Virus record (IMG/VR): IMGVR_UViG_3300037725_000018
Coordinates: 62,001-126,000 of that record
Reading direction: 5' to 3' (one strand)
Length of the DNA: 64,000 nt
Part shown: positions 3,700-63,743 of the stretch, in pieces
Numbering within the stretch: position 1 is the stretch's first letter
Layout of the letters: each line of letters opens with the position of its first letter
Notes under the pieces: generated by a model
Database searches by the model: none
Seen by the model: the letters and a program-made list of their open reading frames with translations, nothing else
Told to the model about the DNA's origin: nothing
Program-made: the position numbers and the translations under genes

Positions 3700-4715
3700 C
3701 GTGAAGAGACTTTGAATCTATTTGTGTTAGGGCTAAAGTCTACCGTTCGCCCATCGATGTGTTCAAACTGAAACTCGATAGAATAAAACCGCTCGGGCTG
3801 TACGTTTTTTAAGTCCACGTCAAAAAAGTACCCGTCTTCACCGAAGCTACATTTTGACTGCTCGCTAAACGGAATAACCCTTCTTCCATTTCGAAGGTCT
3901 TTGATCTGGTATTTTAAGTCCCCGTTTTCGATTCTTACCGGATCTTTGTCTCTTTGAAATTCTTCGACAAATTGCTGCTTGATATACTTTTCTTTAACAC
4001 TTAAACGAAACCTTTTAATTCCGTTTGGTCGATAGGTTCCCTCAATGTTTTTGATTTGGATCGTGGGGTTTGAGCCAATTCCAATAGACGTGCCTACCGA
4101 CGTGTCAATAAACGAGTCGTCATACTTTACGACAAGCTCTGGCACGTAAATTGTGTGCGTCTTATTGCCGAAGTATTTTAGCTCGTAATCAGTTTCATCA
4201 AACTCCGGGTCAGACTTTAAAAGAAACCCGTGGTTTTCAATGACATTTTCGATCCAAGCCATTACAATTGTTGTAACATCTAAAACAACATCTGTGTCTT
4301 GAAATTCGTCAAACGTTTTGAAATTGCCAAATGAAGAAATGAAGTCTCCACCGGGAGAGTCCCAATCCTCCGGGCCTCTACTTTCCCAAGAGACGCCTTC
4401 GGTCGTTTGAGGCTCGTTAAACTTCCGTCCTCTTCCGCGCTCGAAGTCTTTTTCTAACGGATGCACGTCAATATCGTATTCTGCGGGAACGTTTGACGCT
4501 TCCACGGTGTAAAGACGTAAGTCGGCCTCGAACATTTGCCCGGAAATTCCGCTTCCAATATAATTTTCAACACGCTCTAAGTCAAACTTCGATACGATTC
4601 GGCGCTCGAATCCATTTTCTCTTCCAAGCTCTAAAACCTCGTTGACCCCCACGTTTTGCGTTGGCCTGTCTTCATAGAGGGTCGAGTCTTTAAGTGGATT
4701 TAAAAAATGATACAT
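3696..4715 (-). CDS. DNRLRE/CBM96-like domain structural protein
   Basis: KDSTLYE..N.G..E.LE, W...GGDF, DVT..V.AW....NHGFLLK and P.LVV motifs. Confidence 0.6.
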   Translation of the reverse strand: MYHFLNPLKDSTLYEDRPTQNVGVNEVLELGRENGFERRIVSKFDLERVENYIGSGISGQMFEADLRLYTVEASNVPAEYDIDVHPLEKDFERGRGRKFNEPQTTEGVSWESRGPEDWDSPGGDFISSFGNFKTFDEFQDTDVVLDVTTIVMAWIENVIENHGFLLKSDPEFDETDYELKYFGNKTHTIYVPELVVKYDDSFIDTSVGTSIGIGSNPTIQIKNIEGTYRPNGIKRFRLSVKEKYIKQQFVEEFQRDKDPVRIENGDLKYQIKDLRNGRRVIPFSEQSKCSFGEDGYFFDVDLKNVQPERFYSIEFQFEHIDGRTVDFSPNTNRFKVSSR

Positions 4716-4727
4716 ACAGCTTTTTCT

Positions 4728-5111
4728 TTATTCGTCTTCAACTTCGTGCCACTGGTTGCACCATCCTTCCGGCTTTACTTTGCCGCGAATTTGCGAGCAA
4801 ATGTGGTCTCCAGTCGCAACTTCTTTATATAGATATTCACAGTTTAAACACTTCTGTTCTCCGCTGGCTTCGTCTACGTATTGAGAATCTTCTTTCGACA
4901 TTTTATAGGGTGGAGTTCCAGACCCCAACAACCAATAAAGAAGAATGTTTGTGCTTCTTTCATCCGGGTCCATGTTTTTGAACCGCTCTATGGCCTGCTT
5001 TACTTCTTCGGGGGCGTTTTTCCCGGCGTCTGGATACTCGTATTCTTCGGACAGAAGCTTTTTTACCTCTTCCTCAACAACTGAACGAAGTTTCTTTTTT
5101 GAAAGATACAT
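4728..5111 (-). CDS. HiPIP-like high-potential iron-sulfur protein domain with N-terminal extension
   Basis: C-terminal YVDEASGEQKCLNC...HICSQIRGKVKPEGWCNQW matches the HiPIP Cys pattern CxxC..C..GWC. Confidence 0.7.
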   Translation of the reverse strand: MYLSKKKLRSVVEEEVKKLLSEEYEYPDAGKNAPEEVKQAIERFKNMDPDERSTNILLYWLLGSGTPPYKMSKEDSQYVDEASGEQKCLNCEYLYKEVATGDHICSQIRGKVKPEGWCNQWHEVEDE

Positions 5112-21797: not shown

Positions 21798-22934
21798 TTA
21801 AAGAGTTCCTTCTGCAGCTTCAATGAGAACCTCTTTATCTTCGATTCCAGTTCGAAGCTGAAAGCTATGTGCCCGTTCGATCATTTCTCCAAACTTCGGG
21901 CCGGGTTTGTGCCCACGATCAATGAGGTCTTTCCCTTGAACAATCGGGTCAACTTCTACGCCTGTATCCCGAAACCACCGAAAATCTCCCAAACGAATGG
22001 CGCAAATAACCTTCTTAAAGTCTTTAAAGCGGTCTCCAAGTCTGTGTTGAAGCATTCTTACCTCAAAAGGGGTAGGGTTCGGGCTTGACGTTTGAATCGT
22101 TTCTAAACCCTTCTGGAAAGCCTTAACGCGACTTACCAAATTATTTGAAAGTTTGAGGCTTTCTCCAAGAGCCTCCGGGTCTTCCGCGTTTAAAAGAAAC
22201 GTTTCCATCCGGAGACGTTTCGGGGCCGAATCAATGGCAATCTTTCGAAAAACGTCCGTTTCCGGAAATCCAAAGTCTTCAAGAAGCCCAACCTTTTCCA
22301 TAATCGAAAGAAACCGGGAAGGTTTTTTGTCTTTAAACGCCTTCTTAACTTCCATGACCACCCGCTCGACGGAAACCACATTGGAAACGTCCGGGCCGAA
22401 TCGCTTCATCATTTGAAACGTTTCCGGTTCAATGTCAAACCCGAACCTTCCGGCAAACCGGGCTGCGCGAACAATCCGAAGGAGGTCTTCTTTGAACCTG
22501 CGCTTCGGAGCCCCAACGGTTTTTACAATGCCGTTTTGAAGGTTTTCTTTTCCCCCAAAGGGGTCAACAAGGTTTCCACTTGCGTCTATTGCCATTGCGT
22601 TGATTGTGAAGTCCCGGCGAGAAAGGTCCGTGGAAATGTCGTTTGCAAACTCTACGGTTGCTCTACGTCCATCAGTGGACACGTCCTTTCGAAAGGTTGT
22701 GATTTCAAACGGGAAACCATCGACCACGGCTGTAACTGTTCCGTGGTCTACCCCGGTCTTTTTGACGGGAACGCCTCTCTTCTCACACTTTTGAACCACA
22801 GTTTTCGGAACATCAGATGTTGCAAGATCAATGTCGTCAAACTCGCGGCCAAAAATTGAGTCCCGAACGCACCCGCCAACCGCATGAATATCGGAAAGAA
22901 AGTCAAACGTGTCAAGCGCCTCGTTTACTGTCAT
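21798..22934 (-). CDS. cca: tRNA nucleotidyltransferase (CCA-adding enzyme, class II)
   Basis: VGGCVRD, DIDLAT, EITTFR, DLSRRDFTINAMA, RFKEDLLRIVRAARF. Confidence 0.9.
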   Translation of the reverse strand: MTVNEALDTFDFLSDIHAVGGCVRDSIFGREFDDIDLATSDVPKTVVQKCEKRGVPVKKTGVDHGTVTAVVDGFPFEITTFRKDVSTDGRRATVEFANDISTDLSRRDFTINAMAIDASGNLVDPFGGKENLQNGIVKTVGAPKRRFKEDLLRIVRAARFAGRFGFDIEPETFQMMKRFGPDVSNVVSVERVVMEVKKAFKDKKPSRFLSIMEKVGLLEDFGFPETDVFRKIAIDSAPKRLRMETFLLNAEDPEALGESLKLSNNLVSRVKAFQKGLETIQTSSPNPTPFEVRMLQHRLGDRFKDFKKVICAIRLGDFRWFRDTGVEVDPIVQGKDLIDRGHKPGPKFGEMIERAHSFQLRTGIEDKEVLIEAAEGTL

Positions 22935-35702: not shown

Positions 35703-35856
35703 GAGAATGTTGCATCCACCACCTTAGCGGGATTCGAACCCGCGACTACCGCAATCTAGCGCGGCACTCTGACCTACCTGAGTTATAAGGTGTCACCAAC
35801 GGCGGTGGGATTCGAACCCACAGATACCGATCAAGCACCGTTACAGCAACATTCTC
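35703..35856 (-). ncRNA. Double tRNA-like RNA enclosed in an 11-bp stem
   Basis: GAGAATGTTGC/GCAACATTCTC encloses an anticodon-less mini-tRNA and a cloverleaf (35719-35792) with a 6-nt loop. Confidence 0.7.
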
Positions 35857-36296: not shown

Positions 36297-36380
36297 CAAC
36301 AAGTCATGTTGGTTTTTATATATAGGCTCTAACCGATAAAGTTTCAATCCGTTTGGTTATGAAATTTTTACCTGTATGTG

Positions 36381-36456
36381 TAAGGGTAGAGGGATTTGAA
36401 CCCCCGACTCACGGATTAAAAGTCCGTTGCTCTAGGCCAGACTGAGCTATACCCCT
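36381..36456 (-). tRNA. tRNA-Lys(TTT), second copy
   Basis: Loop CTTTTAA. Confidence 0.9.
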
Positions 36457-36480: not shown

Positions 36481-36651
36481 TTGACAAGCGGTGTGCTTTT
36501 ACGCCAAATCGCGAGAGTATTAATCACAGGACGCCTTACCAGTTACGGGGTGCGCTCTCACTTCGTTGACAGCCATCTATTTTCACATACGCGGTCAACG
36601 GCGAACTCTTTAAAGGATGGATGCTTCTAATCCCACCTTCCGCTTTGTCAA
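36481..36651 (-). ncRNA. 23S rRNA H43/H44 (L11-binding domain) mimic RNA
   Basis: GGTGGGA-TTAGAAGCA-TCCATCC-TTTAAAGAGT...GCGTAAAAGC-ACAC closed by TTGACAA..GCGG/CCGC-TTGTCAA. Confidence 0.75.
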
Positions 36652-38448: not shown

Positions 38449-38853
38449 TCAATTTTTGTTTCTAGTAGACGCAGAGTAAGCGGGGCCAATAAGCTCGGAA
38501 AGTTTATACTCTACAAACTTGTCGTCTTTTCCCACATCTTCGATGATAAGAAGATCGTCGCAAAATTCCGACAACGTGTGTTGACAAAGACCACACGGCG
38601 CTTCTCCAGTCTGGTTTTGGGCAGACACCGCCAACATATCAAAATTTGTGTGGCCGTCTTCAACCGCTTTGAAAGCGGCAAGCATTTCCGCATGAACAGA
38701 CGTAGACCTTCCGGAAACCTCTACGTTACAGCCCCCATAAGTGTTGTTATTGACTAAAACAGCAGCACCAACTTTGTACCCGCTATATTTGGCATATGCC
38801 TTTTCTTTAAATTTTCTAGCCACTTTTACTAACCGTAACTTTTGATCTTTCAT
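38449..38853 (-). CDS. cdd: Cytidine deaminase
   Basis: AYAKYSGYKVGAAVL, GCNVE, HAE and PCGLC zinc motifs. Confidence 0.92.
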   Translation of the reverse strand: MKDQKLRLVKVARKFKEKAYAKYSGYKVGAAVLVNNNTYGGCNVEVSGRSTSVHAEMLAAFKAVEDGHTNFDMLAVSAQNQTGEAPCGLCQHTLSEFCDDLLIIEDVGKDDKFVEYKLSELIGPAYSASTRNKN

Positions 38854-40336: not shown

Positions 40337-41812
40337 TTACACGCGAACCATGTCGTAACGATCATCCATGATCGTATTCAACGTAATTTGAATCGGGGTA
40401 ATGTTTTGGCCGGAAAGAATGTTCTTCATAATTGACGGGCTAAATCCGCTCACAAGAGCAGCTCCGCTTTCGGAAAACCGAACCGGATTATTCCCGCTAT
40501 CATCTAGGTTCCAAAACACAATGTTTGGGGCTTCGTATCCAGCTTTTTCGTACTTCTCCCGGACCATGTTCATCGCAGACACCGAACGCCCATCAATATT
40601 GTATGAATCAAACTGCATGTCGGACATAACAAGAATTGTTTCCGGCATTTGGTTTTCGGGTACGTTTCTGCTTTTTGCAAAGGAAAGCAAGCTTTCAAAC
40701 ATCGCAGAAATGTTTGTATTCATTCCCCAAGAAATTTCGTTTAGGCTTTCTACCCGATCTCGGAGATTTGAGCCTCCGATTTCAACGAAACTTGGGTTTT
40801 CGCTAAACGTCACAACCCGGTTTTGAAATGGTCCGGTGTTGTGCTCTGCCGTGTAAAGTCCAAGCCCGATAGCAACGTCAATCGGCCTTGTGGACGAGTT
40901 AGAGTTATAGGAAGCAGTCATGCTTCCGGACACGTCAACAACGGATAGAACATTATCTTCCATCCACACAGGAAGGTTCTTCCACTGCCCTTCAAGTTGC
41001 TTTAGCTCTTTGTCTCCGATAGAAGAGCCGCTTCCAAAAGCATTTCGGGATTGAAGAATGGGCTTGACAATTTCATGTGGAAAAATCGCCCCCGCACTCA
41101 TTTTTGTGTCTGTAGATTCGTCAAGCACGTCGTCTAGGTAAGCTTCAAAACGATCTTCGTCGTTTCGAACAAATGCATTCCGATACTTCCGGATTGCTTG
41201 AGATGGAACAGACTCGTAATCAATGCTATCCCAATTTTCTTCGCACATGTCCTGTTCAACTACGTCACGAAGACCGGACACAAGCTTTCTGTACCGCTTA
41301 GAGCGGTTTCCTACACTTCCACTATCAAACATGTGGTCACGGAGATCCGTAAACATGTCGTGGTCGGACTTGCCTTCAGACGGTGCCCACTTCGCCGCAA
41401 GACTGTCTCCGGACTCCAAGGCTTTTTCATAAAAATTCAAAGCGTCTTCATACACTTCGGTTCCCTTCGTTGAGTGAAGAACATCGTCCCAACGCCCGTA
41501 TTCGGGAATTAGATCAAGGTTTTTTCGGGCCGTTTCTGGATCGTTCTCTGCAAGCCACCGGAACATAATCCGAAACGTTCGCCGCTCTCCTTGTCCCCCG
41601 CGAATGTCGCGGTTATAGAAAAGTGACCGAAGAGCACCTTCCTTCGTTTCTTGATACGCCTTTCGAAAAAGGTCTTCGATGTATTCCGGGTCTTTTGAGC
41701 GAGACGCGCCCATAGAGAAGAAAAGATCCACAAGGTCTTTGCCGCTTGTGGAATGGGTCTTCATCCCATTTTCGGTCGTCTCGTCGTAAATTCCGGTTAG
41801 AATCTTGTTCAT
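40337..41812 (-). CDS. DUF2828-family helical plus vWA protein (Ro60/TROVE-like architecture)
   Basis: TTENGM, RDIRGGQGER, YGRWDD, AKWAP, MIDAS DVSGSM, WGMNTN, SDMQFD, VFWNL, VSGFSP. Confidence 0.9.
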   Translation of the reverse strand: MNKILTGIYDETTENGMKTHSTSGKDLVDLFFSMGASRSKDPEYIEDLFRKAYQETKEGALRSLFYNRDIRGGQGERRTFRIMFRWLAENDPETARKNLDLIPEYGRWDDVLHSTKGTEVYEDALNFYEKALESGDSLAAKWAPSEGKSDHDMFTDLRDHMFDSGSVGNRSKRYRKLVSGLRDVVEQDMCEENWDSIDYESVPSQAIRKYRNAFVRNDEDRFEAYLDDVLDESTDTKMSAGAIFPHEIVKPILQSRNAFGSGSSIGDKELKQLEGQWKNLPVWMEDNVLSVVDVSGSMTASYNSNSSTRPIDVAIGLGLYTAEHNTGPFQNRVVTFSENPSFVEIGGSNLRDRVESLNEISWGMNTNISAMFESLLSFAKSRNVPENQMPETILVMSDMQFDSYNIDGRSVSAMNMVREKYEKAGYEAPNIVFWNLDDSGNNPVRFSESGAALVSGFSPSIMKNILSGQNITPIQITLNTIMDDRYDMVRV

Positions 41813-59064: not shown

Positions 59065-59709
59065 CTATTTATTAAGCTCGTTTGGTTCAACCTCTTTTCG
59101 AAGCCAATCTTCATCGGTTTGCACGTGATCGGGACGAACCCATTTCGCTAAATGCAGACTAAAGTCTTCAAAATCAAACCCCGAAACAGTTCGCATTACA
59201 TAACCCTCTACCGGATCTTCGGATGTTTCATTCAAACGCTTCTCGTTGAACTTTCGGATCTTACTTTCATCATACATCCCCCGCCAAATAACAGGGACGT
59301 GATTTAAATCCAAGAGGCCACACCACTCCACAGTTTTATCCCAACTTAGGCACTTGTTTTCTTCGTTCCAAATGGAAAACACGTAGAAGTATGAATCCAG
59401 ATTTTCATACTTGATGGAGTGTTTTGCGTACACGTTTTCCCCACAAATTCGCCACCCGTCCGGAAGTTGGTGCCCAACCCTTCCGGCTGTCTTTCCTGCC
59501 CATGTGCGGGAGGGGTGATACGGCGTCTGTAGGCTTCGTGCATGGTATTCGCCGTTGGAGTAGATGGTTGTGTTTTCACCGTCCATCTTCTCCGTTAAAA
59601 TGACTTCACGGCCTTCAAAAAAGCTAACGTCTTCATGGTAATCATCGTCTCTGTGCTTTTCAGGAGACCACGGAACGTGTTTGGTTGAAGGGTACTTTTG
59701 CTTTTTCAT
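59065..59709 (-). CDS. RNA ligase (Rnl2-like nucleotidyltransferase domain)
   Basis: KYPSTKHVPWS, TEKMDGEN, GEN, FYVFSIW, EGYV and AKWVR motifs. Confidence 0.88.
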   Translation of the reverse strand: MKKQKYPSTKHVPWSPEKHRDDDYHEDVSFFEGREVILTEKMDGENTTIYSNGEYHARSLQTPYHPSRTWAGKTAGRVGHQLPDGWRICGENVYAKHSIKYENLDSYFYVFSIWNEENKCLSWDKTVEWCGLLDLNHVPVIWRGMYDESKIRKFNEKRLNETSEDPVEGYVMRTVSGFDFEDFSLHLAKWVRPDHVQTDEDWLRKEVEPNELNK

Positions 59710-59875
59710 GGGTCTAACTTTAAAATGAGCCTTCTTACTACTTCGGGTTTTTGTGTTGAAGCTTCTCTGTTGCAAATGTAAACCGAATCCGTGTCGTATG
59801 TAAAAAACTTCGTGGCAACGGACTTGTTCCTAGCAACAACAACGATCATGTTATTTAAATTTCAACCAGACACTT

Positions 59876-63280: not shown

Positions 63281-63329
63281 AGAATATAGACATTAATATT
63301 TGAATTGAAAACAGATAAAAATTTTATAG

Positions 63330-63743
63330 TGGACCCGGCGGGATTCGAACCCGCGTCCGCAGCACCTTTGCAACATCGGTTGTCACAGTCTTAGAATGGT
63401 CTTTATTTTTGACCGACAGACTATTGTATTAGACCACACAAAAGTTTGTGGGTTTTATTTCAACCCGCTATCGGACTTGTTTTACGTTCTGCCTACCAAG
63501 CAAAACAAGTTGAAGCCCAGTAGGAATATCCGATGGTGTGTGCCTTACTCTCTATCGGAGTCGAGAAGTAAGGCTGCAGTTACGCCGCAAGAGAAGCGCC
63601 GAAGTGCTCCTCCATGTTGACGCCTGCAGGAACGCGGTTAACGTTGCCAAGTATTGATTCCGTCAGTTATTTTATGCCCACCTAACGGTAAGGGCAGACT
63701 GCCGACCTTGCTCCGCGTGCTACGTCGAAGCCGTGTCAGGCCC
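63330..63743 (-). ncRNA. ssrA: tmRNA
   Basis: 5' GGGCCTGACACGGCTTCGAC, 3' GGACGCGGGTTCGAATCCCGCCGGGTCCA, G3:U70; tag frame 63648-63580 GNVNRVPAGVNMEEHFGASLAA*. Confidence 0.92.

Follow-up and report, generated by a model that had tools for sequence, protein, structure and literature searches.

A putative free-standing mimic of the 23S rRNA GTPase-associated centre in phage tRNA arrays

To our knowledge, the only examples so far of rRNA being mimicked by another RNA are loose sites that act in cis within ribosomal-protein mRNAs, and we know of no rRNA-mimicking leader for ribosomal protein uL11. The 58-nt domain of 23S rRNA called the GTPase-associated centre (GAC) is by itself the binding site of the uL11 C-terminal domain, and its fold is stabilised by the substitution U1061A (PMC1802607, in which the E. 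coli sequence 1051-1108 with U1061A is printed); Gly130-Thr131 of the C-terminal domain hydrogen-bond the U1060-A1088 pair (PMC2175356). In this work, a window of 64,000 nt of phage DNA (the whole stretch presented above) was analysed, and an element on its minus strand (36651-36481) was compared with this domain. The element is, as far as its sequence tells, a gene for a stable non-coding RNA belonging to a large, so far unannotated phage and prophage family, and the RNA is predicted to work like an rRNA mimic. The RNA family itself, a near-exact free-standing copy of the uL11-binding domain with a variable insert, located in phage tRNA arrays, appears to be undescribed: no family of Rfam 15 matched the element (at gathering thresholds and at E<=10), and a description of such an RNA was not found in full-text literature searches.

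The GAC-like core and its conservation

Read on the minus strand, the element is UUGACAA-A-GCGG-AAGGUGGGA-UUAGAAGCA-UCCAUCC-UUUAAAGAGU-[100 nt, 3' end UUUG]-GCGUAAAAGC-ACA-CCGC-UUGUCAA, letter for letter as in a first-pass annotation that had been made from the DNA alone; the E. coli 23S string (1051-1108) quoted there was likewise identical to that of MG1655 rrlB (L303), used as the comparator, and the insert reported there was present, with a length of 100 nt counting the UUUG linker rather than about 95 nt. With the insert removed, the core (1055-1090 plus 1091-1104) was identical to E. coli 23S 1055-1104 at 40 of 50 positions, and six of the ten differences made up three compensatory pairs (1058:1080, U:A in E. 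coli and G:C in the window; 1064:1074, C:G and A:U; 1090:1101, A:U and U:A). The helix 43 (H43) stem and the 1065-1073 loop were both found in the window, and the nucleotides of the predicted tertiary core were all present: the U1060-A1088 pair, G1071/C1072 with the 1091-1092/1099-1100 pairs, and 1082:1086. Helix 44 (H44) was not continuous over 1087-1102, its 5' strand being split by the insert, and its loop read GUAAAA instead of GUAAUA. The motif TTAGAAGCA-N7-TTTAAAGAG, with up to two mismatches, matched the window once, compared with 0.02 times in shuffles.

The description of the element as a free-standing GAC copy stood: no rRNA gene was found in the 64-kb window at Rfam gathering thresholds, and no Rfam model matched the element. 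Alignment to the large-subunit (LSU) rRNA model, which had been proposed as a check, gave no match around the element at E<=10. A genuine 23S gene or fragment was rejected as an identity, given the missing LSU match, the lack of flanking 23S sequence and the loss of the helix 42 (H42) sequence; since the closing helix varies freely in sequence while staying paired, the H42 sequence has not been copied.

The same architecture was recovered on many other contigs by two scans. A scan of IMG/VR with the 5' motif gave at least 118 loci, about two thirds of which read GGA-N-GU-N-GGC-UUAGAAGCA-GCCA-N-C-N-UUUAAAGAGU followed by non-rRNA sequence; among the matches listed, most such loci had GCGUAANAGC-ACAC located 85-315 nt downstream of the 5' half. 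An independent scan with the family-specific 3' string UUUGGCGUARNAGCACAC (where genuine rRNA has GAGUGCGUAAUAGCUCAC) gave at least 120 IMG/VR loci, and a further 88 in genome contigs from bacteria and archaea belonging to many phyla. The 5' half was present, by fuzzy matching, in 77 of the 82 new viral loci of this second scan, and a covariance model found the complete element in every one of them that was not cut by a contig end. Together, the two pattern scans, the first of them a motif search of viral genomes as suggested in the first-pass annotation, and a covariance model have recovered at least 156 distinct copies, parsed from IMG/VR contigs, bacterial genome contigs and cultured phages. 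A covariance model (R1) built from 17 copies on other contigs, with the window left out, matched the window once (36652-36479, minus strand, 92.7 bits, E=2.4e-25, model positions 1-190) and gave one copy in each of 95 other member loci; one further locus, a 409-kb IMG/VR contig (L141), carried two (3763-4089 and 4721-4945, both on the minus strand, about 630 nt apart).

The family was spread over phages of Proteobacteria, Bacteroidota, Clostridia and other phyla. Cultured carriers were Pseudomonas phages pf16 (where the element fills the gap between tRNA-Asn and tRNA-Pro), Astolliot, Milchi and UNO-G1W1, Xanthomonas phages XacN1, XbC2 and XaC1, Aeromonas phage 4_4572, Cronobacter phage GAP32, Pectobacterium phage CBB, Serratia phage BF, Erwinia phages pEa_SNUABM and Kaldavass, Yersinia phage fHe-Yen9-04, Acinetobacter phage ME3 and a Vibrio phage; in all of them the element was unannotated or lay under a “hypothetical protein”.

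Four features were supported by covariation: the closing helix, variable in sequence, H43, the tertiary pair 1082:1086 and the base stem of the insert. In a formal count over 98 sequences, with 500 shuffles and slid controls, paired cells amounted to 94.6% (72.3% in the shuffles, none of the 500 reaching the observed value) and the covariation score was 0.475 (0.127 in the shuffles); the slid controls gave 35-46%. The closing helix, of 8-9 bp, took all Watson-Crick pair types without any conserved sequence, its positions 1047-1054:1105-1112 being paired in 69-100% (about 40% when shuffled), and G1055:C1104 was found in 154 of 154 members. Within H43, 1058:1080 took all four Watson-Crick pairs (U:A 56, G:C 45, A:U 26, C:G 9), 1057:1081 was A:U (126) or C:G (13), 1064:1074 was C:G (132) or A:U (7), 1062:1076 covaried and G1059:C1079 was invariant; position 1078 was U or C, and 1061 was free (U 79, A 39, G 18, C 4 in 140 members), the stabilising variant A1061 accordingly occurring in 39 of 140. 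The pair 1082:1086 around a UAA triloop, which we take to be the lone-pair triloop of the rRNA domain, was U:A in 90, C:G in 37 and A:U in 9 members. Compensatory changes and selection on the fold, both claimed earlier from the window copy, are thus borne out across the family by Watson-Crick covariation in H43 and the closing helix and by the tertiary 1082:1086 pair.

Conservation of single nucleotides was taken from 80 distinct, model-aligned copies found via the 3' half only, a set that avoids positions fixed by the search pattern. The most conserved were U1060 (99%), A1088, G1089 and U1090 (98% each), G1087 (96%) and G1071 (95%); across the family G1071 and C1072 were nearly invariant and GAGU (1087-1090) was kept in 138 of 140 members. 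Position 1067 was A in 79% and G in 14% of the set, and G1068 (69%) and A1070 (75%) were also relaxed. The earlier statement that the A1067 loop and the junction are retained therefore extends to the family for the junction, nearly invariant at 1087-1090, whereas A1067 is not strictly kept outside the window copy. The H44 consensus was G1091 C1092, GUA(A/G)NA, G1099 C1100, ACAC, with 1096 and 1097 as the most variable loop positions; 1101 was A wherever an insert was present, while rRNA and the insert-free copies have U there, and U1090:A1101 was found in 135 of 140. This pattern points to a folded core that is under selection together with the surface recognised by the C-terminal domain of uL11, both loop tips, where factors and thiostrepton make contact, being under apparently weaker selection; the relaxation of A1067 argues that the fold of the core is selected and not the contacts with factors or thiostrepton.

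The inserted domain and the genomic neighbourhood

An insert of 25-383 nt was found after U1090 in almost every copy, and is a family-wide hypervariable domain at a fixed position, not a peculiarity of the window phage. Its base is a 4-bp stem covarying across insert classes (helix 4) and its 3' end a (C)UUUG linker, UUUG being present in 40 of 52 members of a set not selected on it; the paired base, the linker and A1101 were all found in the window (Table 1). The 154 inserts fell into 86 sequence clusters, 70 of them singletons. The largest insert class (class A, 38 members including the window) carried an invariant 19-nt module, CACCCC-R-(GNRA or UAAC)-Y-GGUAAGG, with AAGUR upstream; the pair flanking the module covaried (G:C 10, U:A 8), which suggests that it may be a binding site of its own. 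Comparison of the insert with E. coli 16S, 23S and 5S rRNA by nhmmer and blastn-short gave nothing above chance, and a copy of the sarcin-ricin loop, of 5S loop E or of the 16S decoding region, judged by eye, was rejected for this lack of rRNA similarity. RNAalifold paired the UG of the linker with C1102-A1103 and left A1101 bulged, giving a four-way instead of a three-way junction; the rRNA-like alternative, U1090-A1101 plus G1087-C1102, was equally compatible with the data.

Smaller versions were also found: a plain 29-nt hairpin as the insert at two loci (L128, L194), and insert-free versions of about 58 nt at three (L045, L094, L100; e.g. L094:1753-1823, plus strand), which keep the rRNA-like UCAC and are closed by CUAG/CUAG and UUUAGAC/GUCUAAA. 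The existence of both kinds of copies indicates that the core alone is maintained. The family offers natural examples of where a tertiary fold that is a classic RNA model tolerates insertions. A GIY-YIG endonuclease gene lay near the insert-free copy of L045.

Table 1. Positions of the parts of the element and of neighbouring features. Positions refer to the window unless a locus is named.
Feature	Position	Strand	Remark
Closing helix, distal 5' strand UUGACAA	36645..36651	-	pairs with 36481-36487; A36644 bulged
Closing helix, proximal 5' strand GCGG (= 23S 1052-1055)	36640..36643	-	pairs with 36488-36491
H43 equivalent (1056-1081)	36614..36639	-	stem 36638-36631 with 36621-36614
H43 nine-base loop UUAGAAGCA	36630-36622	-	A1067 at 36628; U1060 (stem) at 36635
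Junction UUAAAGAGU (1082-1090)	36605..36613	-	lone pair U1082:A1086 plus triloop; A1088 at 36607, U1090 at 36605
Inserted domain, 100 nt including UUUG linker	36505..36604	-	after U1090
Insert base stem	UCGC 36604-36601 with GCGA 36512-36509	-	covaries across insert classes
Insert hairpin	CGUUGAC 36600-36594 with GUCAACG 36570-36564	-	from sequence
Insert AAGUG	36563-36559	-	from sequence
Insert class-A module CACCCCGUAACUGGUAAGG	36552-36534	-	invariant in 18 aligned class-A members
Insert linker UUUG	36508-36505	-	from sequence
H44 equivalent, 3' part	36491..36504	-	G1091 C1092, loop GUAAAA (1093-1098), G1099 C1100, A1101 C1102 A1103 C1104
A1095 of H44 loop	36500	-	A1101 at 36494
Closing helix 3' strand, CGC then UUGUCAA	36481..36490	-	sequence and family covariation
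tRNA-Lys(UUU) gene	36380..36456	-	24 nt downstream of element, same strand
tRNA-like gene	35719-35792	-	Rfam tRNA 50.2 bits
Cytidine/dCMP deaminase	38449-38853	-	
Ro-like protein (DUF2828 + DUF7788 + vWA)	40337-41812	-	3.7 kb 5' of element
CCA-adding enzyme	21798-22934	-	
RNA ligase (PF09414)	59068-59829	-	
tmRNA	63327-63743	-	Rfam 91 bits; ARAGORN tag peptide GNVNRVPAGVNMEEHFGASLAA
Features of interest in L033	3398-3604, 4946-5461, 6055-6504	+	element neighbourhood

Over about 46 kb of the window, 40 tRNA genes and a tmRNA were encoded, without exception on the minus strand, and the element was flanked by a small open reading frame (ORF) and tRNA-Lys. Across the family, 88 of 156 copies had a tRNA at no more than 500 nt and 103 had one at no more than 2 kb, on the same strand in every case; the upstream tRNA was separated from the element by a median of 6 nt and the downstream tRNA by a median of 12 nt, and no preference for the identity of the flanking tRNA was found. 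No sigma-70 promoter or terminator was detected on the minus strand in a scan around the element. Co-transcription with the tRNAs and release by tRNA-processing nucleases are suggested by the shared strand and the spacing, and the tRNA array probably supplies both transcription and end processing of the element. One tRNA-like gene of the window (35719-35792) may have an unusual anticodon loop, its anticodon not being nameable by ARAGORN (“ag”).

A conserved protein neighbour was not detected: when the 1242 ORFs lying within 4 kb were clustered by BLASTP, no cluster was shared by more than 7 of 156 loci, and Pfam searches of the top ORF clusters and of 75 nearest neighbours gave no recurrent family. 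Homologues of uL10, uL11 and bL12 were absent from the window, and none of uL11 or uL10 was found in the other 302 loci. With no encoded or recurring partner protein, any protein partner would therefore be the host's. The window is phage DNA, encoding a baseplate wedge protein that shares 51% identity with its counterpart in an uncultured 484-kb phage, and it also carries a DNA methylase gene; blastn of the window region against GenBank phages matched tRNAs only, so this phage has no close cultured relative there.

Several neighbouring genes are related to RNA metabolism. The CCA-adding enzyme, the RNA ligase and the deaminase of the window form, with the tRNAs and the tmRNA, an RNA-maintenance island. 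In one subgroup of the family a CCA-adding enzyme lay 92-93 nt from the element. In XacN1 (L119, record 150244-150606) the element directly followed ORF260, a gene labelled “2'-5' RNA ligase”, in a gap that carries no annotation, and jackhmmer from the ORF260 protein reached the RNA ligase of the window (PF09414) with E=2.5e-108. On a 518-kb contig (L033) the element lay between a “Swiss Army Knife” RNA-repair HAD domain and a Macro domain protein, and a 68-aa ORF 2 kb upstream scored 26.1 bits against the L7/L12 C-terminal domain, barely above the cut-off of 25.9. Macro-like genes were found within about 6 kb of the element in 10 member loci, and one ORF of the window looked macro-like but found no support in Pfam. 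A general linkage to Macro or RNA-repair genes was rejected, the association being suggestive in L033 and XacN1 only; such genes accompany tRNA arrays generally, and little weight was therefore given to them. The Ro-like DUF2828 protein was also rejected as a dedicated partner: homologues occurred in 711 phage records, but within 4 kb of the element in only 5 of 156 loci, and in GAP32 the Ro-like gene lay about 180 kb from the element. The 75 nearest neighbours, from loci L002-L086, included two MazG pyrophosphohydrolases, two R2K-clade ATP-grasp proteins (one R2K_2, one R2K_3) and one class II aminoacyl-tRNA synthetase core; all are singletons, though in keeping with a translation/alarmone theme.

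Candidate functions of the RNA

We tentatively favour, as a plausible reading that is some way from settled, a stable phage RNA that would be released by tRNA processing, present the GAC fold in trans and most likely bind host uL11 via its C-terminal domain. The RNA would be transcribed with the tRNAs of the array, and its ends cut by tRNA-processing nucleases; its core would fold like the GAC, as suggested by the tertiary signature, and the folded core would then bind in trans a factor recognising this fold, most likely uL11 through its C-terminal domain. Free or exchangeable uL11 might in this way be drawn from ribosomes, or a small uL11-RNA particle might be formed. The relC phenotype reflects the requirement of uL11 for RelA activation, and a possible consequence would be a relaxed, RelA-blind state during infection. 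That phages of many phyla use such a GAC-copy RNA in trans for the capture of uL11 or of GAC-directed enzymes, blinding the RelA-dependent stringent response or neutralising ribosome-directed immunity, is possible and rather doubtful. If true, this would be the first free-standing viral mimic of an rRNA domain, and the base of the ribosomal stalk would be an unrecognised front of phage-host conflict; the cultured carriers, workable at the bench, make the manipulation of the stalk base, of uL11 and possibly of the stringent response by large phages a testable hypothesis.

Several observations weigh against uL11 binding by a GAC-like fold. The insert splits the 5' strand of H44, and covariation cannot choose between the two pairings of the H44 lower stem, because the bases involved are invariant. 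Seven members (L146, L173, L175, L193, L199, L200, L214) carry, besides the insert at U1090, a second hairpin directly after A1077, on the 3' strand of H43, a site that presumably falls within or close to the uL11 footprint. Folding of the window copy gave a minimum free energy no better than that of shuffles (z = -1.13), a measure that is uninformative for an RNA dependent on tertiary structure. Titration would need a very abundant RNA, because uL11 is as abundant as ribosomes, and the hypervariable insert (86 clusters among 154 inserts) has no role in a uL11-binding model.

That insert is what recommends a different use of the same fold, namely as a compact, stable, nuclease-resistant frame or docking handle whose phage-specific insert is the working part. 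Constant cores next to hypervariable inserts, two tolerated insertion sites and the invariant class-A module with its covarying flanking pair would all be expected of such a scaffold; the insert-free and plain-hairpin copies would not, and a mere frame would not need rRNA-identical unpaired nucleotides across phyla, so that we consider this quite improbable. It is unlikely, too, that the RNA is a decoy substrate soaking up host or competitor effectors that attack GAC RNA (ADP-ribosyltransferases, nucleases or methyltransferases) and so sparing the ribosomes, much as phage tRNAs replace or outcompete tRNAs hit by host defences. A toxin acting on GAC RNA does exist: a bacterial protein ADP-ribosylates 23S H44 at 1095-1098 and blocks the EF-G GTPase (PMC8661411). 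The element moreover sits in tRNA/RNA-repair islands, with the RNA ligase, CCA-adding enzyme, Ro-like protein and tmRNA of the window, the ligase upstream in XacN1, the HAD and Macro flanks in L033 and the Macro-like genes near 10 loci; these neighbours are anecdotal and cluster with tRNA arrays anyway, and the macro-like ORF of the window lacks Pfam support. Positions 1096 and 1097, inside the mapped target of the toxin, are the most variable of the H44 loop, and A1067 is relaxed as well. We know of no anti-phage system that targets the GAC, which also counts against such a decoy. The family is a possible pointer to undiscovered host effectors directed at this centre.

Two further explanations carry far less weight. 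Control of a downstream gene in cis, by an rRNA mimic of the ribosomal-protein leader type, has precedents in the mRNA leaders of uL1 and L10(L12)4, for which such mimicry is well established (PMC10931766); the neighbours of the element are tRNAs at 6-12 nt with no conserved ORF, no neighbour gene recurs, no ribosomal-protein gene is near and neither L10_leader nor any other Rfam leader matched, which makes this explanation very improbable. An artefact (host rRNA joined on in a chimeric assembly) or a neutral relic (a captured rRNA fragment in decay) might be suspected since over about 35 nt the 5' half matches real 23S with up to 100% identity and since contaminating rRNA is known in phage records (short “phage” records annotated as 23S). 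This is scarcely credible for a structure found on over 150 independent contigs, some of them finished cultured-phage genomes, with compensatory changes and no flanking rRNA, in which the closing helix is private to each copy while the insert site, the UUUG linker and A1101 are common to them; chimeric assembly, which the first-pass annotation had named as what would refute it, is ruled out by the recurrence of the architecture in complete cultured-phage genomes.

Comparison with known systems

The closest relative is the 23S GAC itself. The element shares with it H43 and the UUAGAAGCA loop, U1060, A1088, G1071, C1072, the 1091-1100 and 1092-1099 pairs, 1082:1086 with the UAA triloop, the H44 loop GUAANA, G1055:C1104 and A1103; it differs in lying outside any rRNA gene, phage-encoded within tRNA arrays, in its variable closing helix, in the domain of 25-383 nt with UUUG placed between 1090 and 1091, in having A at 1101 and in the relaxation of A1067, G1068, A1070 and A1096. 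The ribosomal-protein leaders (the uL1 site of rplKA and the L10(L12)4 site of rplJL) are, like the element, RNAs outside the ribosome that imitate a protein-binding site of rRNA, but they are cis-acting 5' untranslated regions and loose mimics, whereas the element is a near copy of rRNA standing free among tRNAs.

Y RNAs such as YrlA resemble the element in the long terminal helix formed by their 5' and 3' ends, in carrying a module that mimics a translation RNA (tRNA in YrlA), in being found in phages and, in the window, in the nearby Ro-like DUF2828 gene. Unlike them, the element has no conserved Ro-binding sequence in the closing helix and mimics rRNA instead of tRNA. Identity with a Y RNA was rejected, given the variable closing helix, the Ro-like gene within 4 kb in 5 of 156 loci only and the absence of a match to Rfam Y RNA models. 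GOLLD and ROOL occupy the same niche inside phage and prophage tRNA arrays, but the element is far shorter than either and has a core that can be recognised as an rRNA domain, and identity with either was rejected for lack of a match to their Rfam models; the family would be a third RNA class, after these two, in the unexplained cargo of phage tRNA arrays.

Phage RNA decoys and replacements (tRNAs that escape defence, pseudo-ToxI) likewise imitate a cellular or defence RNA and redirect a protein; the element differs from them in mimicking a functional centre of the ribosome. Neither rRNA mimicry nor the phage RNA decoy is thus a new idea; what is new is the stand-alone, near-exact copy of an rRNA domain.

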